The position numbers and the translations under genes are program-made. DNA of 64,000 nt, from IMG/VR virus record IMGVR_UViG_3300042934_000980, positions 1 to 64,000 of that record. One strand, written 5' to 3'. Under the pieces are notes generated by a model. That model made no database searches. It was not told the DNA's origin and worked only from the letters and a program-made list of their open reading frames with translations. Shown here piece after piece: positions 3,208-59,455 of this stretch; positions within the stretch are counted from its first letter, which is position 1, and each line of letters begins with the position of its first letter.

Positions 3208-3723
3208 CTACTCAGGGCGCCTTGGAGGGGCCTCTGGGACGGTGTTGTCCTCGGGGTAATCCAGTCTTCCGTAAGCCGGAGGGGGAGGAGGTGCCGGAGG
3301 AGGTGTTTCAGGACGATTCACTGGGTGACTGGGTGGTGCAATGATCTCTGCCATCTTGCCGCGGATCTTGGTGGTGAGCGAGGTGCCCTCCAGCAAAGTC
3401 GACAGCGTCTTGTTGGCGTTGATCCAGGTCCAGGCACAGATGATCGGACCGACGTTCATGATCAACATTATCATCATGTCCGGCCAGCCTTGTCCGGCAG
3501 TCACCGAGTGGTTCACGCTCCAGGCGTTCATCAACGCCGCGATGCAGGTGGTCAGTACGGCCAGTGTGCCTGTCAAGTTACGCAGCATCACTGTCCACTT
3601 ACCAAAGACTTCGCGTTCAATGCCACCTGGGTTGTTGCTGGGTACTTCAATGTTGAAGGCAGGCTCCACCATCACAGGGACAGGCTTGCCCTCTTCATTG
3701 GGGGTCTGGGTTGGATCGGTCAT
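3208..3723 (-). CDS. Two-TM membrane protein, holin candidate
   Basis: Two hydrophobic helices (LTGTLAVLTTCIAALMNAW; MMIMLIMNVGPIICAWTWI) and a Pro-rich C-terminal tail; adjacent to the spanins. The start at 3723 has a GGAG RBS. Confidence 0.45.
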   Translation of the reverse strand: MTDPTQTPNEEGKPVPVMVEPAFNIEVPSNNPGGIEREVFGKWTVMLRNLTGTLAVLTTCIAALMNAWSVNHSVTAGQGWPDMMIMLIMNVGPIICAWTWINANKTLSTLLEGTSLTTKIRGKMAEIIAPPSHPVNRPETPPPAPPPPPAYGRLDYPEDNTVPEAPPRRPE

Positions 3724-4309
3724 CGGGGAATACTCCATAATGCTTAGCTATCACTTCACAGCGATAAAGAGTGACGGCCCCGGCATCGACAGAGTGTTCG
3801 TCCATCAATGCAAGATCATGATCCCCTGGGTTCAGCCACGTGTAATTAAGAAGGCCTTGTGCAACATCATCTTTGGTCATACCCCGACCCGTGACCCCCA
3901 CAATAGCCTTGGCCAAGTTAGGCAAGACCATGGACAGGTGCACGTCGCGTGACGTACAGGTCTCACGCAACATGCCCACGCACTGGATCAACTGCTTAAA
4001 CGTGAGTGCACTCATGCCCAAGAAGTTGTCTTCGCAGATCGCAGTGTCCGGCTTGTAGGTGTCGATCAGGATACCCAGACTTCGTCCCATGCAGTAACTA
4101 CGCGCCATCACCCGTGTGCTGGCCAGGTCATCAAACTGAACTGGCACGTCATACAGGATCTTTTCGCCGTAGATGGTGTTTCCATACACCAGTTGAAAAG
4201 GCTCAGGCTTCTCAATGTTCACGTCAACGAACCAGACGCCCATGTTGGTGGTAGACGGGTCAATACCCATGACCCGGTACACACCTGGATGATTCATACC
4301 CTTAGACAT
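3695..4309 (-). CDS. ruvC: RuvC-like Holliday junction resolvase
   Basis: Catalytic motifs VMGIDPSTTNMG, AICED and DEHSVDAG of the RuvC/RNase H fold. Confidence 0.85.
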   Translation of the reverse strand: MSKGMNHPGVYRVMGIDPSTTNMGVWFVDVNIEKPEPFQLVYGNTIYGEKILYDVPVQFDDLASTRVMARSYCMGRSLGILIDTYKPDTAICEDNFLGMSALTFKQLIQCVGMLRETCTSRDVHLSMVLPNLAKAIVGVTGRGMTKDDVAQGLLNYTWLNPGDHDLALMDEHSVDAGAVTLYRCEVIAKHYGVFPDDRSNPDPQ

Positions 4310-4938
4310 AAGTAGCCCTGCTGGGACCCGTGAAGGATCTCGACAATTGCCACCATCTCAGAGTAGTCCACCATAAACTCGGTGGGGAGATCTTGCGTGG
4401 AGCCTTTGTACACCAGCTTAAAGCCCCCAGTGCACAGCTCACCAATGGTGCCCGACATCCAACCCCCCATAACGCGGTAGTTGTTAAGCAACTGCGCCAA
4501 GGTGTAGGCCACAGTGTTGTCGGTGCCCACGATGGGGTAGGTGTTGCCCACCCCCACGATGTCCAAGAACTCCAACTCTTCGACGTTGTGCACAGTAATA
4601 GGTGCGTTCAGCCAGACGGCCCGCGTGCCGGTGTCGTACAGCGGATTGTCAATGACCCAATCGTCTGAGTCGTCAACCGCCAGGCTGGAACCCTCCTCCA
4701 CCGGTTGAACGGCCATGGTCTTGTTGGTAAACGTCACCAACACCTCACCACTCTCCTTGTCAATCAGCTCCAGAGCAAACTGACGCGAAGGGTTCAAGAA
4801 CGCTTGGGACTGTTTAAAGTCTTCAGCGCTCAAGGCGGTGAGGTAAAACCCATTGCACAGTTCAATGGCTTGGACGGAGGTCATTCCTTCTTTCAACGGG
4901 AGGTGAACACCCCCCTTGAGGATTTCAGGAATCTCCAT
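4294..4938 (-). CDS. Hypothetical protein
   Basis: 214-aa ORF tightly packed in a minus-strand operon. Confidence 0.6.
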   Translation of the reverse strand: MEIPEILKGGVHLPLKEGMTSVQAIELCNGFYLTALSAEDFKQSQAFLNPSRQFALELIDKESGEVLVTFTNKTMAVQPVEEGSSLAVDDSDDWVIDNPLYDTGTRAVWLNAPITVHNVEELEFLDIVGVGNTYPIVGTDNTVAYTLAQLLNNYRVMGGWMSGTIGELCTGGFKLVYKGSTQDLPTEFMVDYSEMVAIVEILHGSQQGYLCLRV

Positions 4939-4941
4939 GGG

Positions 4942-5889
4942 TTAGTTCCCCTGGCTGGAAGTGCTGGCGGTGGCCGTGGTGTGCAGCAGCATAGGCTCAC
5001 TGGCACCGTGGTCGAACGCCAACTGGATCTTGGTGTTGTTGATCGCGTTACGCCCGTCACGCTCGGTGATGTAGTGGCTGAACACCGCGCTCAGCACTTC
5101 GGTGTAACGAATGGTCGCCCCGCCTGCGATCTGACCGTCGAACTGGGTATCAATCCCCCACGCCACACCCACTTCGTTGATCGACGCGTAGCTGCTGTCG
5201 CCAAAGTAGACTTTGCAGGCGTTGGCCAGTTCCACCAGGTCCTGCGCACTCATCGAGCAGTCCAGAATGGCGGAGCTGTTCATGTACGTGTCGCTGATCG
5301 GGACGGTGTTCTCGCTGGTGAAGTCCACCGGCTGCGGGTTGAACAGGTTGTCCTTGGACGGCACGTACGGCTTGGCCGTCTCGTTACCTGCTGCATCGCG
5401 GGTGATCTTGTTGACCGAGGGGTTGTAGTTGGCAAAGTCAATGAGCTTGAGCCAGTAAACCGCGTAGGTCACACCGTCGCTCAGCGTCTCAACCGTACGC
5501 AGGCGGTACTTGGCGCGGTTGACGTTATCCAGGTCGTTGTCGATCGGACGCAGGATAAACGGCACCGCGGTAAACAGGTTGCCGTCAATGGGCTGGTGCT
5601 GGTTGACTTTAAGCTTGGTCACGCCGCGCGCGTCTTTACCGTCGCAGGCGCTACCACGAATACCGATGCCGAAAAACTTCAGCTCGAAATCACGACCGTT
5701 CTTCACCCCGATCGATTCCTCCCCCATGATGTTGTACACTTCATTGAGGGTGGTGTACTGAGGCAGGTTGATCTTTTGGTTGGTCGAACAGCACTTGCCG
5801 ATCAGGTTGCCGTAAGGGGTGTTGGTGACGGTTTGCGTAGGAACCTCAGAGCGGTTCTGATCTTGTACTTCGGCACTGGAAATGGCCAT
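4942..5889 (-). CDS. Conserved virion structural protein (phiKZ gp139-like)
   Basis: Motif PFILRPIDNDL...RAKYRLR...YWLK that I recognise from phiKZ-like phages; syntenic with ruvC. Confidence 0.6.
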   Translation of the reverse strand: MAISSAEVQDQNRSEVPTQTVTNTPYGNLIGKCCSTNQKINLPQYTTLNEVYNIMGEESIGVKNGRDFELKFFGIGIRGSACDGKDARGVTKLKVNQHQPIDGNLFTAVPFILRPIDNDLDNVNRAKYRLRTVETLSDGVTYAVYWLKLIDFANYNPSVNKITRDAAGNETAKPYVPSKDNLFNPQPVDFTSENTVPISDTYMNSSAILDCSMSAQDLVELANACKVYFGDSSYASINEVGVAWGIDTQFDGQIAGGATIRYTEVLSAVFSHYITERDGRNAINNTKIQLAFDHGASEPMLLHTTATASTSSQGN

Positions 5890-5900
5890 GAAAAAAGTTC

Positions 5901-6305
5901 CTATTGGAAATAGAGAATGAAAGAGTTCCGAAATCGCATAGAATTCGGGGCTGTAACCACGGTGATTTGCTTATCACCCAGCACCAATTTGCTGATGTCT
6001 TCGGGGAGCAATTCCAAGTTGATTTGTCTGTTGACCCAGGACGCGATGTGGCCTTTGCTCAGCAACACGTCCCGGCTCGACTGCATGTCCTTGGGGATCC
6101 ACAACGACTTTTGCAGGCTTAAGGCTGTCACGTCCACCCGAGGGTGTTCGTACATCTCAGGCATGCCGTCTGGCGGCGCTGCAAGGAAGATGTGGTTCCC
6201 AGTGATACGATTTACCCGCTGGTAGACAAAGGCTGAAGCACTTAGGTCTTTCAGCCCCCGTTTACTGCAGAAGGCTTTGCGCACCAGTCGTAATTCCTGA
6301 CTCAT
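5901..6305 (-). CDS. Small virion/baseplate accessory protein
   Basis: AAGGAG RBS. The C-terminal VNRQINLELLPEDI...APNSMRF pattern resembles a beta domain common in jumbo-phage tail proteins. Confidence 0.5.
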   Translation of the reverse strand: MSQELRLVRKAFCSKRGLKDLSASAFVYQRVNRITGNHIFLAAPPDGMPEMYEHPRVDVTALSLQKSLWIPKDMQSSRDVLLSKGHIASWVNRQINLELLPEDISKLVLGDKQITVVTAPNSMRFRNSFILYFQ

Positions 6306-6316
6306 GGCGCAGCTCC

Positions 6317-8686
6317 TTAGGTGTTGGTTTTAAGCACGCTGTAATCGGTGCCCGGCAAGAGGGTCCAGTCGTTTTCGGTCGTTTGCGTTTGCTCGATCTC
6401 CAGCAACCCGTACTGGGTATTTGGAACGCGGGTAAACGGTAAGACCTCATCGCCTGGGAAGACCAACTTGTCGTAATACGTAGGCGGGATGTCAACCCAA
6501 GGCTCCACCGGGGTCAGGTCTTCAGGGAACTCCAACTGACCGTAGTAGGTCGGTGGGGGCAACTCTTCAACCGGTTTGGGGATATCGGGCAACGGCAACA
6601 TACGGAAGTACGAAGTGTCGTTAATTCGCACCGCGTAATCACGCAGGTCTGTAGTCAGGTCCACAGGTTTGATGTGGTCCCGGCTTTTGATCACGCCAAA
6701 GCCTTCGGAATCCATCACAAAGGTGGGCTTGGCCAGATCCACCAACTGCACCAATGTTTCGGTGTGGCGAATGCTGTCAATGTGCCCGTTGCTGTCAAAC
6801 TTGGCATTCTGGAAGTCCCCGTACGAACCGTTGCCTTCGCTGGTCCATTTAGGGTCGCCCACAAACGTTTCGTTCTTAAGCTCCGTAACCTCGGTGCCGT
6901 CATCCATCTCCTTGACCACGTTAATGGTGTAGGAGGAAAGCCGCATCATGATCTCAATCAGATCGTTCTGCTTAACCCGCAGCGACGGTTGGCTGTTGCT
7001 GTCCCACCCGGTGATGCGTTTGAAGATGTCCCACGCAAAGTTACGCGCTTCATCGACCGAGTACTCCGAGAAGTCCAGCTCATACGCCCCCAGCAGGTCC
7101 TTATAGGCTGTGTAGGACGTCATCTCGATGTAGCCTGACTCGTACATGAGTTCGGTGGTGTTTTTCACCCGCGCCCGCATGTTGAGGTCGTAGTACTGAC
7201 TGAAGATCTTGCGGTGGTTCCACTTAGCGTCGTACACCTGTGCGCTGTAGCTCATCAGGTATTCGGGAGCAATGAAGGTGTCCACGTTGATCCACTGATC
7301 GCGAATCCCTTGGGCCGTCTTCTCGTGGATAAACGCACGACCCCCGATCGCAATCAACGCGTCAATGGTCGGTGGCTTGATCTTCATGACGTTCTGATAG
7401 AACGCCGGCTCAATGGTGACTGGATCTTTGCCTTTGGTCAGGTCAATCAAGTACCGCCAGACATAGAAGGCATCCCCCACCGGCAATCGCAGCGACTTAC
7501 CGTTCTTGGGGTCCACCACCAAGATCTTGCCGCGGAACAACCCTTTACCCGCCAGATAGATCCACTCGTTGTACACGGTGGACATCAGGGTGTCGATGTG
7601 CCGGTTGGTATAATCGGTCATCGACGACACAAGGGTCTTGGTAGGCAGTTCCGAGTGCAGCGAGTACTTACCCTTAAGCAGCGCATCCTCGTAATAGATC
7701 GAGGTCTGGTCGTAGTTGTCTTTGGCCAAGTACTGCTGTTTAAGGATCAACGCTTGGGTGTCGATGAACGAGGCTGCCCGACCGTAGTCCTCAATCAGGT
7801 TCAACTGCAACCGGCGGTACAACGGGGTGGGGGTTAACTCATCGAGCTGGGTTTCGGTGGTCTCCACCATGTCGTACTTGGCCAGCGGGATTTCAGCACT
7901 GGTCAGCATGTTGTCCAGCAGTTTACCAAAGGTGTACTGCTGACCGGGGTTGTTCTTGACCCAGGCGATATTGCGGTACAACCACATGATCTGAAAACGG
8001 GTAAGGCTATTCTTATACTTGGAGAAGTCCCCAAATGAATCTATATGGCTCCAGATAAAGAAGTCGTGCGCATACCGGGTACCGATCGCTTCAAAGCGAA
8101 TCGTGCAGATCGCCTTGATCAAATCTGCGTACAACTGCATCACCGCGATAGGCAGCATCAAGTTGTCGGTGATCATGTAGTCATTCTTAAACAAATGACT
8201 GGTTTCGGCATTGACCCAGCTCTGTAGCTGCGGGATCAATTGGTCCTCATTCCAGAGCACCAGATTCTCGTTGTACTTGAGAATCTTATAGTCATCGGCC
8301 TCAATCGTCTCGGTGTACGGGATGGGAGCCAATATGCCGCGAATCAATTCTGACTGACCCGGGTAGGTGGTGCTCAGCCTTTGGAACAACTCACCGCCTG
8401 AACTGTACTCACGAAAGGTTTGCAGGTGAACGTTCAGGTTGGCCTTATTAAAGACAATCTCTTCGCCGGTGTCCACGGACTTGACGAACATGATCTCGTC
8501 AGTTGGGTGGTAGTCACCGTTTAAGTTCATGTAATAGCGCCAGGTGCGCTTGTCTGAACTGACGGGGTACCCTGCTTTTTGCAGGATGACGTTGTCGCGT
8601 AGAGCCACAGCCTCAATCTTGATCACCATGGTTCGCGTTAAGCGCAACACACTGGTTAGAAATGCATCGAATTCGATATTGTTCAT
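6317..8686 (-). CDS. Virion structural/baseplate protein (phiKZ gp128-like)
   Basis: Motif WRYYMNLNGDYHPTD; divergent from the portal gene as in phiKZ. Confidence 0.7.
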   Translation of the reverse strand: MNNIEFDAFLTSVLRLTRTMVIKIEAVALRDNVILQKAGYPVSSDKRTWRYYMNLNGDYHPTDEIMFVKSVDTGEEIVFNKANLNVHLQTFREYSSGGELFQRLSTTYPGQSELIRGILAPIPYTETIEADDYKILKYNENLVLWNEDQLIPQLQSWVNAETSHLFKNDYMITDNLMLPIAVMQLYADLIKAICTIRFEAIGTRYAHDFFIWSHIDSFGDFSKYKNSLTRFQIMWLYRNIAWVKNNPGQQYTFGKLLDNMLTSAEIPLAKYDMVETTETQLDELTPTPLYRRLQLNLIEDYGRAASFIDTQALILKQQYLAKDNYDQTSIYYEDALLKGKYSLHSELPTKTLVSSMTDYTNRHIDTLMSTVYNEWIYLAGKGLFRGKILVVDPKNGKSLRLPVGDAFYVWRYLIDLTKGKDPVTIEPAFYQNVMKIKPPTIDALIAIGGRAFIHEKTAQGIRDQWINVDTFIAPEYLMSYSAQVYDAKWNHRKIFSQYYDLNMRARVKNTTELMYESGYIEMTSYTAYKDLLGAYELDFSEYSVDEARNFAWDIFKRITGWDSNSQPSLRVKQNDLIEIMMRLSSYTINVVKEMDDGTEVTELKNETFVGDPKWTSEGNGSYGDFQNAKFDSNGHIDSIRHTETLVQLVDLAKPTFVMDSEGFGVIKSRDHIKPVDLTTDLRDYAVRINDTSYFRMLPLPDIPKPVEELPPPTYYGQLEFPEDLTPVEPWVDIPPTYYDKLVFPGDEVLPFTRVPNTQYGLLEIEQTQTTENDWTLLPGTDYSVLKTNT

Positions 8687-25270: not shown

Positions 25271-25325
25271 TAAGGATTATTTTATGTTTGAGTACCAAAT
25301 AAGTATTTTTTTATTTGGGTTCTAT

Positions 25326-54118: not shown

Positions 54119-54150
54119 GATATCCCCAGGGAATGACCCCCGGGGATATC
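54119..54150 (-). terminator. Hairpin
   Basis: Stem GATATCCCC/GGGGATATC followed on the minus strand by TTATG. Confidence 0.65.
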
Positions 54151-54168: not shown

Positions 54169-54678
54169 TTACAGAAGTCCCTCTTTCTTAAGCAGTTGCT
54201 CTACCTCACGTTGCTCTTTGGTGGGCTGACCGCCTTCGGGTTGACGTTCAGCTTCTTGCCTCGCCCGCCGATCACTGCCGGTCACGATCCCCTCAATCAA
54301 ATCCTCCACAAAGTAGGCCGGCAGGTTCAGGTACTCCTGCAAAGGAATGATGTCCTTAAGCCTGGCGTACCCGTACTGCTGACCGATGTGTTTAATGGAC
54401 CAAGGATGGGTGAACTTGTTCTCCTCCTCGATAAACCGCACCGAGCTGTGAGGGGTCATGGTGGCAGGGGTCAGATACCCCATGTTGAAGTCGTGCAGGA
54501 ACTGCTGGTCAAACTCTTGCTTTTCCAAAGTGCCTTGCAAGGGTTTGCCCAACAGGTTCTGGGTAACTGCACGGTGGGTGTCGGAGTAAACCCGTTGGGG
54601 TTTTATTCCGAGATGGCTTCTTGCCGGGCCGCTTGCGCTTCCGAGGCTTGGGCCATCATCTTCAACTGGGTGAGGGTA
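54169..54678 (-). CDS. -1 frame extension (gpT-like) of 54603..56327; no convincing independent start
   Basis: The frame is open from 54747 to the stop at 54169, across the upstream stop codon. The first candidate start is a TTG (54552) without an RBS. Confidence 0.6.
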   Translation of the reverse strand, partial: YPHPVEDDGPSLGSASGPARSHLGIKPQRVYSDTHRAVTQNLLGKPLQGTLEKQEFDQQFLHDFNMGYLTPATMTPHSSVRFIEEENKFTHPWSIKHIGQQYGYARLKDIIPLQEYLNLPAYFVEDLIEGIVTGSDRRARQEAERQPEGGQPTKEQREVEQLLKKEGLL

Positions 54679-56327
54679 AAAAAAGCCATGAATGGGTCCA
54701 GCGGGGTGTAACCCAGACGCCGGCTTTGCTCGTTGGCTGAAGAGTGTTCACCGCATTTCGGGCACTGGCTGTTGGCCACCCCCACAAAGGTGTGGGACAT
54801 CAGCGGGGTCTTGTTGAGCACGAAGGCTGAGAACGCTTTGTTCAGCGCAGCGCTCTCCAAGATCACGTCCATCAAACCCTTGTTGAACTCCGTCGAGTCA
54901 TGCTCCGAACGTTTAAGAACAATGTCCTTCTCGTCGGTGTCCGGGGTGGCCACGTTGATGAACGCCCGTACCCAGTGCAGGTATTCGGTAGCGCCCAAGG
55001 TGGCGAGCAGCATGCCCACTTGGGTTTCGAATTCCTGCTGGTCCACGATCTTGCTGCGCAGTTCGGCCAACTGAGGGTTGACACGCCCTGCGTAGTAGTC
55101 GAAGGTTTCAAACGCTTCGGCCAACGACGGCGAACCGATTTCCAGGCAGATCGACTTGTCCTCGTTGTACACCCGGTTGGTGTCTAGGTTGTACGTGGCC
55201 GCCATGATCAGTTCCAGGGTCTCTTCAACGGTGTACTTGGCCTTGCCGTTGAGGAGGTTGGCGTAGATCGCGTAGTCTTCAGGTGTGTGCGCCGAGTGAC
55301 GGATACGCACCATGCGGTCCGGGTCCGAGATCTGGAACTCATGCCAGTCGCACTTGTCCGACAGGCAGCGCAGGTCCAGGTTGATGCCGTTGGCGTGAGT
55401 AGCACGGATCAACGCCATGCACAGCACACCAAAGTCCTTCAACCGGATCACCCGGGCCAACTCGTTGAAGTCAACGATGCCGGTAACGCTGCTGCTGACG
55501 ATACGCGGGGCCAAGAACTCCCACACCGCACGGGCGCCCGCAATGTAAGCCAGCGAGATGCTGTTCTCACCCACTGTACGCACGTAGCCTTTGACGGTCC
55601 GGTTGATGTCAGAGACCAACCCTGCCAGGTCCAGCTTGCTTGGGCGGATGAACGTCAGGTTGGTGTACGAATCACGCAACAGCACGTCGAACTGGAAGTC
55701 GCCCTTTTCAGCCCGGATCGAGGAACGGCGCATCAGCTCAGAAACCGAGAAGCCTTTGGAGCTGTTGCTTGGGCGCTTGCCGACGATGTCCGGGGTGACG
55801 ATCTTGCTGCCCCGGTCAGAGACGTTGGCCACGTCAGGTTCGTTGAGGATCTTTGAACGCACCGCCACGTTGTCCTGGAAGTCTTCAAAGAAACGGTAGA
55901 GGTTGGAGGCCAGGTCTTCCATCTCTTCCAGGGTTTTGTTCGGGTAGCTTTCTTCCAAGTACTGCGACCATTCGTTCTTGGCCACAGCTTGGACACCGTC
56001 ACCCACTTGGCCGGACTTGTACAGGTCCAGCACCGCCTGCTTTTGCAGCCAGCGACCCAGCAGCTTTTGGGCTTGTTCCTGATCGACCCGGGTATTGCCC
56101 AAGAAGAATGGCAGGTAACCCTTGGCGCGGTCTTCGTCGGTGCCTTCACGCAGTTTGGTGTCTTGCACCGGCAACACTTTTTTCATCGGGGTATTGGCGG
56201 GCGTGTGCACGTCGCCGAACGCTGCTTCGGATACTGCAACCGGTTCTGCTGGGGTAGCCGGCGCCGGAGGAACCGAGTTAAGCTCTTCCGAACCTTGTGG
56301 GTTTTCAATGTCACTCATTTCAGACAT
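54603..56327 (-). CDS. Putative tail assembly chaperone / T4 gp26-like hub assembly protein
   Basis: 574 aa; two Cys pairs (CLSDKC, CPKCG) followed by DPFMAFF, as in gp26/TAC-type proteins. Confidence 0.55.
   Translation of the reverse strand: MSEMSDIENPQGSEELNSVPPAPATPAEPVAVSEAAFGDVHTPANTPMKKVLPVQDTKLREGTDEDRAKGYLPFFLGNTRVDQEQAQKLLGRWLQKQAVLDLYKSGQVGDGVQAVAKNEWSQYLEESYPNKTLEEMEDLASNLYRFFEDFQDNVAVRSKILNEPDVANVSDRGSKIVTPDIVGKRPSNSSKGFSVSELMRRSSIRAEKGDFQFDVLLRDSYTNLTFIRPSKLDLAGLVSDINRTVKGYVRTVGENSISLAYIAGARAVWEFLAPRIVSSSVTGIVDFNELARVIRLKDFGVLCMALIRATHANGINLDLRCLSDKCDWHEFQISDPDRMVRIRHSAHTPEDYAIYANLLNGKAKYTVEETLELIMAATYNLDTNRVYNEDKSICLEIGSPSLAEAFETFDYYAGRVNPQLAELRSKIVDQQEFETQVGMLLATLGATEYLHWVRAFINVATPDTDEKDIVLKRSEHDSTEFNKGLMDVILESAALNKAFSAFVLNKTPLMSHTFVGVANSQCPKCGEHSSANEQSRRLGYTPLDPFMAFFTLTQLKMMAQASEAQAARQEAISE
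54678..54684 (-). promoter_or_regulatory. Putative -1 ribosomal frameshift heptamer T TTT TTT
   Basis: ATG GCT TTT TTT ACC in the zero frame, in the correct X XXY YYZ phase. Confidence 0.6.
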
Positions 56328-57195: not shown

Positions 57196-58143
57196 ATGAT
57201 TATTGACACTCAAGAAGCGGTATTGGTTAACGAGGATGATGATCTTGCCGCCAGCCTCATGGGGGGTATCTGGGAGGACTTTAAGGCCTCGATCCCCGAG
57301 CCTCAAGCTAAACTATTAGTCAAGGCGTTTAATTTAATTCTCCTCAGCACCCCTGAATCATTTCAGCTGGACGAGGACGGTGACGCCGGCAGCTTTGATA
57401 CGCTGTTGCCCAACATCGTCACGGAAATCTTGGTGGATGACAACACACACATCCCCGAAAAGAAAAATGCGGTGTTTGAGCTCATAACCGGTAATATAAT
57501 CGACACCTTGGTACAAATGGGCTTTACCCTCGATGAAGACGAGGCCATGCCCCAAACATTGCTGGAGATGATCAACATCGGCCAGTTGTTCTTTGACCTG
57601 GACCAGTACCAAGACTTGATCGGGTTGGCTGACCTGCTGGACTCACGCGACATTCCACCCAAGGAACGTTTCCTGTTGTTGATGGAAAAGTACTTGGGCG
57701 AGAACTTTGATTTGGACGTCTATGAACGTCTGATCGTCGACATCAGCGAGATGACCTTGATGGTGATCCGCAATGCCCTGTTGCAAGAAGACAGTGCCGA
57801 AGGGGTGCCCGTTAATATCATTAAGCGCATCGTGGCCAACAAGGCCGCGCTGGAAGACACCTTGGTGTCTGGACACATCCGCAACAACGGTCAGCTGGGT
57901 GGGTCGGTGCACAGCTTTCTGAACTTCTTTAAGCGCGAGCTTGAGGTGTACACCGACAACCCCACCGAAGATAACTTGGTGGCTTATGGTCGGGAAGTGG
58001 CGGCGATCTACTTGGCCAGTGAATTGAACACGCCTATGATCAAGGACGGGTTGATCCGTTACTTAAGCGACATCATCACCGATTACACCGCCATGCTCAA
58101 GATCGAAAAACTCATCAACGCGTTGGTATTGACTGATGACTAA
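57196..58143 (+). CDS. Acidic conserved protein preceding the vRNAP subunit
   Basis: 315 aa; overlaps the next gene by 8 nt. Confidence 0.6.
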   Translation: MIIDTQEAVLVNEDDDLAASLMGGIWEDFKASIPEPQAKLLVKAFNLILLSTPESFQLDEDGDAGSFDTLLPNIVTEILVDDNTHIPEKKNAVFELITGNIIDTLVQMGFTLDEDEAMPQTLLEMINIGQLFFDLDQYQDLIGLADLLDSRDIPPKERFLLLMEKYLGENFDLDVYERLIVDISEMTLMVIRNALLQEDSAEGVPVNIIKRIVANKAALEDTLVSGHIRNNGQLGGSVHSFLNFFKRELEVYTDNPTEDNLVAYGREVAAIYLASELNTPMIKDGLIRYLSDIITDYTAMLKIEKLINALVLTDD

Positions 58144-59434
58144 ACTTGAATTTCTCAAGTGGTGCTTTGACAACCAGGGCTATGGCTTAAAAGCCATGAT
58201 CCAGTCAATCATCACCATCCAGTTTGAAGACGAAGACTCCTCGGGGCAGTTTAAGAAGGTTCCGTACGCAGTCTTTGTAGAAGGCGGGAAGTACTGGGCG
58301 TTGGTGAACGACGAACCGGTGGTAGTGGACGGTGATGTGACTCAGTCGCTGTTTCACATGGACGACATCCTGGAGCTGCCCGGGGACTTTCACCCTTGCC
58401 TGAAGAACAAGGACACCCGCACCACCTTTGGCTTGTTCTTCTTCAACGTGGTGCTCTTCTGGGAGACATGGCATGGGTTGGTGGACTACATCAACCGACC
58501 CTTCACCAAACCTCTGATCGAGGGCATTATCAGCGACCTGATGGTCGATGACCCCAAACCTGGAGAGACGGTCCCGGAAGGCAAGAGCCCGGCCAGTGAG
58601 TGCTTGAAGTTCACCGAGAACTGTTACTTCCTAGAAGGCCTTGGGGCGCACTTTATCAAGCCAGGTGGGGTAGACGTCTTGGTGGTGAGCCCTGCGGTCT
58701 TAAAACGCAAGGCAGAGCTGCTGGAGCTGCACAAGCACGAGCTGAACGACCCGGTGGTGTTCACCGCCATTGTCGATGAGCTGGTGAAGCTGGACGAAGC
58801 TGAAATGCTTAAGGGTCCAAGTAAGAACTTCTTCATTAACAAGAAGTTTATCCACACCGCACGTAAGCGGATGTTCATCGCCTTTGGTATTGAACCCAGT
58901 GCCGATGGGGAAGGCTGGCAAGCCCTGCCTGATTCGTTGGACACAGGGATTGACCCCAAGCACATCGTGGACTACATCAACACCGCCGTGGCTGGTTCTT
59001 ATAGCCGCTCTATGGCGACCGGTGACGGTGGCGCACAGGTGAAGGCGACCCTACGCTTGATTGGTCGTTCCACGGTGGCTGAGGAGGACTGTGGGAGCCC
59101 TAAGGGCGAACCTATCCACATCAACTCCCTCAACAAGAAGCAGTGGGCTGGTTCTTACCAGATCGTGGACGGCAAGGCGGTGTTGCTGACTCAAGAGGCG
59201 TTGGATAAGTTGGTCGGTAAAACCATCAACATCCGCGTCACTGAGTACTGCACTACCAAAGAAGGTAACTACTGCAAAGTCTGCTGTGGTGAAAGCTTGG
59301 GTAAATACGGCACCCGTATCAGTGCTGAGGTGGTATTGATCCCCACCACCTCGATGTTGACGCGAATGAAAGCGGCGCATACCGCAGGAGGGACAATCGT
59401 AAGGTTAAATCTGGCCACGGCTATCCGGACCTGA
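58136..59434 (+). CDS. Virion RNA polymerase beta'-like C-terminal subunit (phiKZ gp80-like)
   Basis: Bridge-helix-like GSYSRSMATGDGG, Zn ligands EEDCGS...YC...YCKVCCG, and trigger-loop-like LTRMKAAH. Confidence 0.85.
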   Translation: MTKLEFLKWCFDNQGYGLKAMIQSIITIQFEDEDSSGQFKKVPYAVFVEGGKYWALVNDEPVVVDGDVTQSLFHMDDILELPGDFHPCLKNKDTRTTFGLFFFNVVLFWETWHGLVDYINRPFTKPLIEGIISDLMVDDPKPGETVPEGKSPASECLKFTENCYFLEGLGAHFIKPGGVDVLVVSPAVLKRKAELLELHKHELNDPVVFTAIVDELVKLDEAEMLKGPSKNFFINKKFIHTARKRMFIAFGIEPSADGEGWQALPDSLDTGIDPKHIVDYINTAVAGSYSRSMATGDGGAQVKATLRLIGRSTVAEEDCGSPKGEPIHINSLNKKQWAGSYQIVDGKAVLLTQEALDKLVGKTINIRVTEYCTTKEGNYCKVCCGESLGKYGTRISAEVVLIPTTSMLTRMKAAHTAGGTIVRLNLATAIRT

Positions 59435-59455
59435 AACAAAAAAATAAAGCATACG

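Follow-up and report, generated by a model that had tools for sequence, protein, structure and literature searches.

A conserved signal for a probable -1 frameshift in a core gene of phiKZ-like jumbo phages

Introduction

Near the end of a 574-codon gene in IMG/VR virus record IMGVR_UViG_3300042934_000980, the mRNA carries a run of seven U's, and the reading frame one base back remains open beyond the stop codon. Does this run make some ribosomes slip into the next "gene", or are the two ORFs separate genes, as they are annotated in every record that we looked at? To address this question, we analyzed a 64,000-nucleotide stretch of that record (positions 1 to 64,000, hereafter the window) together with related phages. 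An earlier note, based on the letters alone, had proposed a programmed -1 frameshift yielding a G/GT-like protein pair in a jumbo phage. Our data support the conclusion that slippage at this site is very probable, although the evidence is entirely comparative.

Results

The heptamer and the open -1 frame

We first re-examined the window, and found that what the earlier note described is correct to the base. The mRNA reads AUG GCU UUU UUU ACC, so that the run starts at the third base of an Ala codon, in X_XXY_YYZ phase. The coordinates of all features are given in Table 1. After the slip, the reading is YPHPVEDDGPSLG... for 169 amino acids (aa), which would give a 550+169 = 719 aa product. The junction would accordingly read ...MAFFYPHPVEDDG... 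in the window and ...MLSTFFYFGGLEVK... in phiKZ, and the corresponding tryptic peptides would read ...LGYTPLDPFMAFFYPHPVEDDGPSLGSASGPAR and ...IPIDMLSTFFYFGGLEVKPDGVVNDLR, respectively.

Table 1. Features of the locus (positions in the window; all on the minus strand)
Feature	Position	Description
ORF A	54603..56327	574 aa; phrog_4585, the family of phiKZ gp77 (Chimalliviridae core gene cg18); four invariant Cys residues (C321, C326, C522, C525); last helix spans 545-573
Zero-frame stop	54605-54603	Stop of ORF A
Slippery heptamer	54678..54684	U_UUU_UUU (GCU UUU UUU; Ala548 third base, Phe549, Phe550)
Open -1 frame	54747 to 54169	Stop at 54171-54169
Dual-coding overlap	54603..54677	Zero frame: last 24 aa of A (TLTQLKMMAQ...EAISE) plus the stop; -1 frame: start of the extension (YPHPVEDDG...)
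Trans-frame extension	54169..54678	169 codons plus stop, in the -1 frame relative to A
ORF listed separately by gene callers (in ORF B)	54169-54552	phrog_19747; contained in the extension
First NTG of the -1 frame after stop A	54552	TTG; no Shine-Dalgarno pairing (duplex energy +0.2 kcal/mol)
Stretch between stop A and the first NTG	54553..54602	Looks intergenic, but is open and evolves as coding sequence in the -1 frame
Linker	54586..54678	Pro/Ser/Gly-rich, predicted disordered (extension residues 1-31; pLDDT below 50)
B domain	54181..54429	Conserved, helical (extension residues 84-166; pLDDT 64-87); invariant His91 motif H-P-W-S and motif PL.DYL.LP...V.D.
Window-specific stem	54612..54657	GAUGGC (54657-54652) / GCCAUC (54617-54612), beginning 21 nt after the heptamer; not conserved, probably not a stimulator

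To determine if the heptamer could be incidental, we counted T6H heptamers across the window and found them to be depleted (8 found versus 29.8 +/- 6.4 expected); the two other T7 runs are intergenic. The site is more than chance, and its conservation in relatives, described below, is far beyond chance.

As homopolymers are error-prone, the earlier note had asked that a sequencing error be excluded. Raw reads were not mapped to the window itself, so the length of the run was checked there only indirectly, by the identical IMG/VR contig, by two soil-metagenome runs from two different studies that contain 100% of the sampled 31-mers of this region, and by all closest relatives, which also have T7. 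In addition, contigs spanning the run in three EL-like runs show no indel. The same split is present in more than 40 independently sequenced phages and metagenome contigs, with T7, T6C, T6A or T8 always giving the same frame relation, and the zero-frame C-terminal helix and its stop are conserved. Thus, a miscall splitting one 719-aa gene, or a decaying pseudogene, is a barely credible explanation.

Conservation of the signal in relatives

Megablast of the region against phage genomes returned no near relative. ORF A matches phrog_4585 at E 3e-107, as does phiKZ gp77 at E 9e-196, and cg18 corresponds to phiKZ gp077 in Table S3 of Prichard et al. 2023. The gene order RNAP beta' / gp79-like / gp78-position gene / A / B is the same in all phiKZ/EL-type records read, whereas Phobos and SPN3US keep A-B beside an RNA polymerase gene, but in a different order. 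Pseudomonas phage vB_PQ1 was left out because its assembly has fragmented genes.

The earlier note had stated that non-slippery Phe codons in homologs, or stops in the -1 overlap, would count against frameshifting. Neither was found. In 35 of 35 distinct loci surveyed, the heptamer is in phase and the -1 frame is open to the end of B (155-190 codons after the slip), and this is also the case in nine more distant phages, namely, OBP, PS1, D3, pEt-SU, SXP01, Phobos, phiKZ (gp77/gp76.4), SPN3US (gp39/gp40), and RSL2. These lineages span GC 0.36-0.55 and amino-acid identity down to about 20%. The heptamer is U_UUU_UUU, U_UUU_UUC, or U_UUU_UUA in all 44 lineages, encoding Phe-Phe or, once, Phe-Leu: Kosakonia phage Kc263 has U_UUU_UUA, so that the slippery pattern is kept while the amino acid changes. 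The +1 frame closes at once.

Elsewhere in ORF A, the UUU share of Phe codons is only 0-0.3 in most lineages, as these genes prefer UUC. The chance of the heptamer arising from codon usage, multiplied over 14 lineages with under 50% identity, is 10^-16.9; likewise, the chance that the -1 frame stays open up to the first NTG, multiplied over 14 lineages in all of which it is open, is 10^-19.5. Since the lineages are related, these products overstate independence. Linker length varies only by whole codons (88-96), and B always lies in the -1 frame although the spacer length varies.

Selection on both frames

To investigate if the overlap is constrained in both frames, we measured synonymous-site conservation along ORF A. 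The peak starts exactly at the first base of the heptamer and runs to the stop of A: all 15 highest windows lie in the overlap, and third positions at -1, 0, +2, and +4 are invariant in 21/21 lineages. Pro2 and Pro4 of the -1 frame are invariant, while the zero-frame residues vary. Beyond the stop of A, the seemingly intergenic segment shows substitutions biased to third positions of the -1 frame (218/151/357 by codon position), and among single-difference codons 184 are synonymous versus 92 non-synonymous, i.e., a 2:1 excess.

Initiation of the downstream ORF

Independent initiation of the downstream ORF had likewise been named as a refuting observation, and it is what an ordinary separate gene with a non-canonical or poorly recognized start would require; the open -1 frame upstream of that start, together with the T-run, would then be incidental. 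All GenBank records looked at annotate B in this way; Miami, FishSpeaker, and a few metagenomic lineages have an ATG with some SD pairing 36-46 codons after the heptamer; and some lineages have an ATG with a good SD sequence in the linker (for example, the surveyed lineage L062, -9.7 kcal/mol), so B may also start independently there. However, we found no conserved start position or SD sequence. In the window, the best candidate gives -3.0 kcal/mol, against about -5 to -6 for the starts of ORF A in most relatives. In two further surveyed lineages (L006 and L035), RisingSun, and Kc263, the first NTG lies 60-66 codons after the heptamer, at the very start of or inside the conserved B core. GenBank starts are inconsistent (TTG in EL, internal Met in D3 and phiKZ), and the called N-termini of 74 representative B proteins scatter over profile positions 1-112, with none longer than 172 aa. 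A separate gene would also leave the heptamer conservation, the synonymous constraint that begins at it, and the coding-type evolution and conserved residues upstream of any start unexplained; we thus regard this alternative as very unlikely.

No natural in-frame fusion was found among 1.84 billion representative proteins, nor among 34 A homologs of 559-586 aa. In the phiKZ TnSeq supplement (PMC12676376), PHIKZ077 (1602 bp) and PHIKZ076.4 (243 bp) carry 0 insertions, while the neighbors 076.2 and 076.3 carry thousands of reads.

RNA structure and the mode of slippage

The stem proposed as a stimulator in the earlier note is present in the window and appears in its minimum-free-energy fold, but it is not conserved. 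Single-sequence folds differ between lineages, RNAalifold found 0 pairs over 24 lineages, and Rfam gave no match; no conserved stem-loop or pseudoknot lies 5-9 nt downstream, a feature that is common but not universal at such sites, and there is no upstream SD-like element. The efficiency could therefore be low.

The absence of a conserved RNA stimulator raises the possibility that the same A-B protein arises by transcriptional slippage, whereby the phage or host RNA polymerase adds one extra U, so that a share of the mRNAs carry U8 and read straight from A into B. Most lineages have a homopolymer of 7 and some of 8 (RSL2 T8, SPN3US T7 followed by C), and we are not aware of how phiKZ-type RNA polymerases behave in this respect. 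Contigs from libraries labeled RNA that span the EL run show no insertion, but contigs drop rare variants and these are not shown to be transcripts; this test is weak, does not separate the two modes of slippage, and leaves the matter undecided. Nevertheless, the conserved feature is the codon phase and the X_XXY_YYZ pattern rather than the run length (6-8 nt): nine lineages have only six T's followed by C or A, and the run always starts at codon position 3. Moreover, known bacterial slippage sites usually need about nine or more identical bases. We consider transcriptional slippage unlikely.

Searches for a function

To explore what A and B might do, we searched sequence and structure collections. 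Pfam gave no hit for A, B, and six distant homologs (E<=0.1, and E<=5 in a second search), and PDB sequence and fold searches returned nothing. Using the AF2 model of A (pLDDT 87, pTM 0.86), Foldseek against BFVD linked A to T4-like "baseplate hub assembly proteins" (E 1e-3 to 8e-3, TM 0.45-0.52), and the ESM Atlas neighbors of A (score 0.90, 194 shared features) include clusters carrying PF12322. In contrast, T4 gp26 and gp51 themselves score 215 and 177 bits against PF12322, which A and the six homologs do not match. The earlier note had suggested profile comparison with these families; hhalign of the A family against the T4 gp26/gp51 family gave 3-18% probability (3-8% against the gp26 family), so that profile and fold evidence together do not settle the relationship. 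Across these runs and those comparing the two halves of A with each other and EL-type with phiKZ-type B, registers were plausible but probabilities were only 0.2-18%; we therefore do not claim an internal duplication or B-family unity. The ESM Atlas on B, and a BFVD fold search with the low-confidence B model, were uninformative. The only TAC signal was a 103-residue structural neighbor of another cluster's model (TM 0.16/0.55).

Discussion

Our analysis supports the central interpretation of the earlier note, a programmed -1 frameshift at U_UUU_UUU that fuses ORF A to the downstream frame, but not its stimulator stem, and its likeness to T4 gp26 only weakly. "G/GT-like" holds as a description of the expression logic, not as family membership or as a shown function. 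The note's remarks that the locus is not next to tube or tape-measure genes, and that such a shift is undescribed for phiKZ-like phages, agree with our findings: searches of the literature, subscription journals not being covered, found no description of a frameshift in these phages.

In the explanation that we favor (probability roughly 0.8), ORFs A and B form one recoded gene. Most ribosomes would read A to its stop and make the 574-aa protein, whereas a fraction would slip back one base while the two Phe tRNAs sit on the heptamer, replacing the last 24-residue helix of A with a roughly 30-aa flexible linker and a roughly 130-aa helical domain. B appears to be made mainly or only in this way, and the heptamer itself seems to be the main signal. 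In this view, the arrangement is ancestral to the phiKZ-like nucleus-forming jumbo phages (phiKZ gp77 plus gp76.4), and that it is never resolved into a fused ORF implies that both forms are needed in a set ratio. What the computations demonstrate is the signal, the open frame, coding-type selection in both frames, the absence of a conserved start for B, and conservation across the family; that slippage happens on the ribosome, how efficient it is, and what the proteins do are inferences. No trans-frame protein, junction peptide, or ribosome-profiling signal was seen, as no proteomic or profiling data were examined and the Grad-seq supplements lack these genes. For function, our best guess is a non-virion assembly factor for the tail or baseplate hub related to T4 gp26/gp51, with B as an added binding module in the manner of lambda G/GT or P2 E/E+E'. 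On absence from virions, there are no direct data: the phiKZ record marks gp79-81 as structural but not gp77 or gp78, and the main text of the Goslar virion paper does not name gp081, which does not decide the point either way.

A bolder and doubtful reading is that A and A-B are the counterpart of the lambda G/GT pair in phiKZ-like myoviruses, a group in which we know of no such pair (T4-type phages likewise). A would then be an enlarged gp26/gp51-type hub assembly factor whose frameshift-added B domain tethers it to the tape measure (gp181 in phiKZ) or to the tube-initiator complex, with the slip frequency setting the stoichiometry of tail initiation. If so, the frameshifted-chaperone principle would extend to giant contractile tails, and T4 gp26/gp51 would be tied to the same logic.

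The finding defines an unannotated protein of about 700 aa, essential-looking in phiKZ, for every nucleus-forming jumbo phage examined, including the model phages phiKZ, EL, SPN3US, and RSL2 (checked directly) and, by cg18 orthology only, Goslar and RAY; some of these phages are studied for therapy. It corrects the annotation of the small downstream "genes", gives a concrete handle on tail or hub assembly through cg18, a core gene of unknown function, and adds a deeply conserved, apparently stimulator-free U_UUU_UUN site to the set of bacterial recoding signals.

Comparison with known systems

T4 gp26/gp51 (PF12322; NCBI name "gp26 family baseplate hub assembly chaperone") share a layout with A, i.e., two Cys pairs, then CPxCG, then about 10-25 residues, then Phe-Phe close to the C-terminus, and T4 gene 26 is also annotated with two products (26 and 26'). 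However, A is 2.5-3 times longer, T4 encodes Phe-Phe as UUC UUU, which is not slippery, and its second product comes from an internal start rather than a frameshift.

In E. coli dnaX (tau/gamma), the shifted product is the shorter one and the site has strong flanking stimulators (an upstream SD-like element and a downstream hairpin), whereas here the shifted product is the longer one and no conserved stimulator was found. Both are cases of an essential (here, essential-looking) gene in which a -1 slip on a homopolymeric heptamer gives, or here would give, two proteins with a common N-terminal body and different C-termini; in dnaX their ratio is fixed.

The tail assembly chaperone pairs made by -1 frameshift (lambda gpG/gpGT; P2 gpE/gpE+E'; Xu, Hendrix and Duda 2004) differ in that A is 508-705 aa rather than about 100-150 aa, matches no TAC Pfam family, and lies beside the virion RNA polymerase beta' gene, in the block that also holds the gene for a gp79-like virion protein and a DNA polymerase gene, not between the tube and tape-measure genes; the presumed phiKZ tape measure, gp181, is far away, and no binding to a tape measure or tube protein has been shown. 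As in those pairs, an X_XXY_YYZ heptamer lies a few tens of codons before the stop of the upstream ORF, the two proteins would share the N-terminal body, the longer one would gain a downstream domain lacking a start of its own, and the arrangement is conserved across very divergent phages although the sequences diverge. P2 uses a T-rich heptamer (T6G), and in such pairs a strong RNA stimulator is often absent.

Slippery heptamer near the end of ORF A

The earlier note had described a U_UUU_UUU heptamer near the end of a 574-aa ORF, an open -1 frame passing the zero-frame stop, and a TTG without a ribosome-binding site as the first possible start in that frame. Near the end of ORF A the mRNA reads AUG GCU UUU UUU ACC, and the run of seven U's starts at the third base of the Ala codon, so that it has the classical X_XXY_YYZ phase. 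The -1 frame is open across the zero-frame stop, and a slip on the heptamer gives a product of 550 + 169 = 719 aa, whereas the +1 frame closes at once. The first NTG in the -1 frame after stop A has no Shine-Dalgarno (SD) pairing, and the best of four candidate starts reaches only -3.0 kcal/mol, relative to about -5 to -6 for the starts of ORF A in most relatives. The length of the T7 run, for which the note had asked that a homopolymer error be excluded, was confirmed only indirectly in the window itself. T6H heptamers are avoided in this genome (8 found versus 29.8 +/- 6.4 in shuffles, i.e., about 3.7-fold depleted), and the only other T7/A7 runs in the 64-kb window are both intergenic; one sits in an AT-rich spacer, and the other comes just after the stop of another ORF and before a GC-rich hairpin (CCCTACCCAC...GTGGGTAGGG). 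An A6 run near the 5' end of ORF A (AUG AAA AAA GUG, in the conserved motif TPMKK) is not in X_XXY_YYZ phase and was therefore not treated as a second slippery site. In addition, a perfect 9-bp inverted repeat, GATATCCCC ... GGGGATATC, lies about 20 nt after the stop of the extension and could be a terminator-like or regulatory hairpin at the end of the A-B unit (B being the downstream ORF), although no T-run follows it. Thus, every detail of the observation made in the note is correct.

Coordinates of the features described in the text
Feature	Sequence	Position	Strand
ORF A (574 aa)	Window	56327-54603	minus
Slippery heptamer (seven U's)	Window	54684-54678	minus
Zero-frame stop of ORF A	Window	54605-54603	minus
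Start of the open -1 frame	Window	54747	minus
Stop of the -1 frame	Window	54171-54169	minus
First NTG (TTG) of the -1 frame after stop A	Window	54552	minus
Conserved block before the stop of A (nucleotide alignment columns 63-95)	Window	about 54606-54622	
A6 run in ORF A	Window	56178-56184	
Inverted repeat after the extension	Window	54119-54150	minus
Other T7/A7 run	Window	25306-25313	
Other T7/A7 run	Window	59438-59444	
ORF ending before one of the other runs	Window	58136-59434	
"Intergenic" gap after the A homolog	phiKZ locus	4689-4906	
"Intergenic" gap after the A homolog	Aeromonas phage D3 locus	3528-3763	
T4 gene 26 region	T4 locus	5803-6429	minus

Conservation of the heptamer and of the -1 frame in relatives

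The window is part of a 220-kb IMG/VR contig from a soil metagenome and has no near-identical phage in GenBank. ORF A belongs to phrog_4585 and B to phrog_19747, both of unknown function. A tblastn search found homologs of A in 69 jumbo-phage records, including EL (43% identity), RisingSun (38%), Miami (36%), and Vibrio and Aeromonas phages (27-31%). In the phiKZ/EL-type phages the gene order is the same, i.e., a virion RNA polymerase beta' gene and a gp79-like virion gene on one strand, followed by a small gene, A and B on the other strand. In Phobos and SPN3US, A-B also lies beside an RNA polymerase gene, but on the same strand and in a different order. In Pseudomonas phage vB_PQ1 (PQ516283), the whole region is broken into many short ORFs compared with EL, which looks like an error-rich assembly rather than biology.

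The note had named two findings in homologs that would speak against recoding, namely Phe-Phe encoded by non-slippery codons and stops in the -1 overlap. We collected 63 loci from GenBank, IMG/VR and JGI metagenomes, of which 35 are distinct. All 35 carry U_UUU_UUU, U_UUU_UUC or U_UUU_UUA in the same codon phase, 70-88 nt before the stop of A, and in all 35 the -1 frame is open from the heptamer to the end of B, 155-190 codons later. Two of the collection scans used a peptide pattern containing Phe-Phe, which biases the sample toward lineages with those amino acids but not toward particular codons. In Kosakonia phage Kc263, Phe-Leu is encoded with U_UUU_UUA, so the slippery pattern is kept while the amino acid changes.

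To assess if this conservation exceeds chance, we used several measures. Elsewhere in ORF A, Phe is mostly encoded by UUC (the UUU share is 0-0.3 in most lineages), and for 14 lineages with less than 50% identity to one another the product of P(NNU) x P(UUU|Phe) is 10^-16.9. Among all 9-codon windows of ORF A, the 15 with the highest synonymous-site conservation all lie between the heptamer and the stop; third positions at -1, 0, +2 and +4 are invariant in 21/21 lineages, while positions just upstream vary freely. The probability that the -1 frame stays open only as far as the first NTG, multiplied over the 14 lineages, is 10^-19.5, and the distance from the heptamer to the invariant His of B varies from 88 to 96 codons, always by whole codons. 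As the lineages share ancestry, these multiplied probabilities are upper bounds on significance; however, the signals are independent in kind and all point the same way. In the roughly 40 codons between stop A and the conserved B core, close relatives differ 218/151/357 times at codon positions 1/2/3 of the -1 frame, and codons with a single difference are synonymous 184 times against 92. Likewise, the extension has invariant Pro2 and Pro4 directly after the slip, while the zero-frame residues there vary (TLT, IHS, VLT, DQA, DRT).

Absence of a conserved start for B

Independent initiation of the downstream ORF had also been named as an outcome that would refute the frameshift. The first NTG lies 36-66 codons after the heptamer, depending on lineage. 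In RisingSun, Kc263 and two further lineages of our collection (L006 and L035), it lies 60-66 codons after the heptamer, at the very start of or inside the conserved B core. The conserved Met of the NMGY motif never has an SD sequence. Independent initiation of B in some lineages is not excluded. In GenBank, TTG was chosen in EL and internal Met codons in D3 and phiKZ, and the annotated B starts differ from record to record in the roughly 20 records examined; the phiKZ and D3 records leave "intergenic" gaps of 218-236 nt after the A homolog and annotate truncated B genes (phiKZ gp76.4, 80 aa; D3 gp201, 69 aa), although these gaps are open and conserved in the -1 frame. A profile of the extension searched against 1.84 billion representative proteins found 74 proteins of 61-172 aa, whose called N-termini scatter over profile positions 1-112 and none of which is long, and the 34 A homologs found in a 5.8-billion-protein set are all 559-586 aa. 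The frameshift arrangement is therefore never replaced by a fused ORF, suggesting that both the short and the long product are needed.

Distribution among phages

Searching with more distant members extended the A family to 205 phage records. The sites that we checked by hand are all in phase and open to the end of the downstream ORF. In phiKZ, phrog_12109 matches residues 27-163 of the extension, which includes most of the "gap".

Codons at the slip site in distant members of the A family
Phage	Codons at the site	Remark
OBP, PS1, D3, pEt-SU, SXP01	NNU UUU UUC	
Phobos gp41/gp42	CUU UUU UUC	
SPN3US gp39/gp40	GUU UUU UUC	
RSL2 ORF189/188	GUU UUU UUU	
phiKZ gp77/gp76.4	ACU UUU UUU	-1 frame runs 167 codons through a 218-nt "gap" in a 37%-GC genome

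phiKZ gp077 is core gene cg18 of the Chimalliviridae (Goslar gp081, RAY gp267), listed as a hypothetical protein, whereas B is not in the core list (Prichard et al. 2023, Table S3). In the supplement of a phiKZ transposon-sequencing preprint (PMC12676376), PHIKZ077 (1602 bp) and PHIKZ076.4 (243 bp) have no insertions according to our reading of unlabeled columns, while the neighbors 076.2 and 076.3 carry 1527 and 5481 reads, respectively. Both parts therefore look essential.

Mechanism of the proposed slippage

The strict conservation of codon phase and of the X_XXY_YYZ pattern, including runs of only six U's, fits tandem tRNA-Phe slippage on the ribosome. It fits polymerase stuttering less well, because that depends on run length. 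As a one-U insertion in the mRNA would give the same protein, transcriptional slippage remains a rival, which we consider unlikely. Contigs of four sequencing runs were aligned to the IMG/VR copy of EL, and those spanning the run in three of them have no indel; these are assemblies that drop rare variants and are not shown to be transcripts, which leaves this comparison without a verdict on transcript slippage. The programmed -1 frameshift proposed in the earlier note is supported by these results. The conserved heptamer, the open -1 frame, its coding signature and the lack of a conserved start for B are demonstrated by sequence comparison, whereas slippage on the ribosome and the function of the products are inferred. 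All of our evidence is comparative or predicted and includes no protein, ribosome-footprint or raw-read RNA data. The efficiency of the shift is unknown.

We found no conserved stimulator. Minimum-free-energy folds differ between lineages, RNAalifold on 24 lineages predicted no pair, and Rfam gave no match. The GAUGGC/GCCAUC stem that the note had suggested as a possible stimulator is real in the window, but it is not conserved and starts 21 nt after the heptamer. Two nucleotide blocks are conserved, namely the roughly 15 nt after the heptamer and GAAGCCCUCUC near the stop of A, and double coding can account for both (TLTQL over YPxPV; EALS over RSPL). For the second block, GAAGCC(C/A)UCUC(C/G), which is conserved across most lineages, double coding may be the explanation, but a role for the RNA was not excluded; in several lineages (collection loci L008, L024 and L033) it can pair with a G-rich stretch just after the stop, forming a hairpin over the stop codon.

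Predicted structures and possible function

AlphaFold2 gave a confident model of A (pLDDT 87, pTM 0.86), in which the slip site, F549/F550, sits at the start of the last helix (545-573), so that the shift swaps this helix for the extension. The model of the extension is poor (pLDDT 62), with residues 1-31 disordered, followed by a helical domain. A has no PDB relative by sequence or by fold. Against predicted viral structures, it matches jumbo-phage proteins strongly (E 1e-13 to 6e-34) and T4-like "baseplate hub assembly proteins" weakly (E 1e-3 to 8e-3, TM 0.45-0.52), and its ESM Atlas neighbors include clusters carrying PF12322.

T4 gp26 and gp51 are both PF12322 members, and are thus paralogs, and NCBI names the family "gp26 family baseplate hub assembly chaperone". 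T4 gp26 ends ...CPECGKTHAHVIRGLKEFFELL (CPECG...EFFELL), a layout like that of A, in which CPKCG is followed by 23 residues and then FF. T4 encodes its Phe-Phe as UUC UUU, which is not slippery; gene 25 starts on the last base of the gene 26 stop codon, which puts it in the -1 frame. Profile comparison of A with the gp26/gp51 family had been named as a check in the note, but neither Pfam nor hhalign confirmed homology. A role as a hub or tail assembly factor is therefore an inference, which we put forward only tentatively. The phiKZ record marks gp79-81, but not gp77, as structural, and the Goslar virion paper does not name gp081 in its main text, both of which are compatible with a non-virion assembly role.

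Comparison with known recoded genes

In line with the note, which knew of no such case, we found no description of a frameshift in phiKZ-like phages in the searchable literature, subscription journals excepted. What appears to have been overlooked is the presence of a well-understood recoding mechanism in this gene family and in this phage family. The expression logic is that of lambda G/GT and P2 E/E+E', i.e., a shared body plus a frameshift-added domain with no start of its own, conserved across divergent phages, and the "G/GT-like" label of the note holds in this sense. It also resembles dnaX. The differences from the tail-chaperone pairs are size (508-705 aa), genomic position (not between the tube and tape-measure genes) and family (no TAC match).
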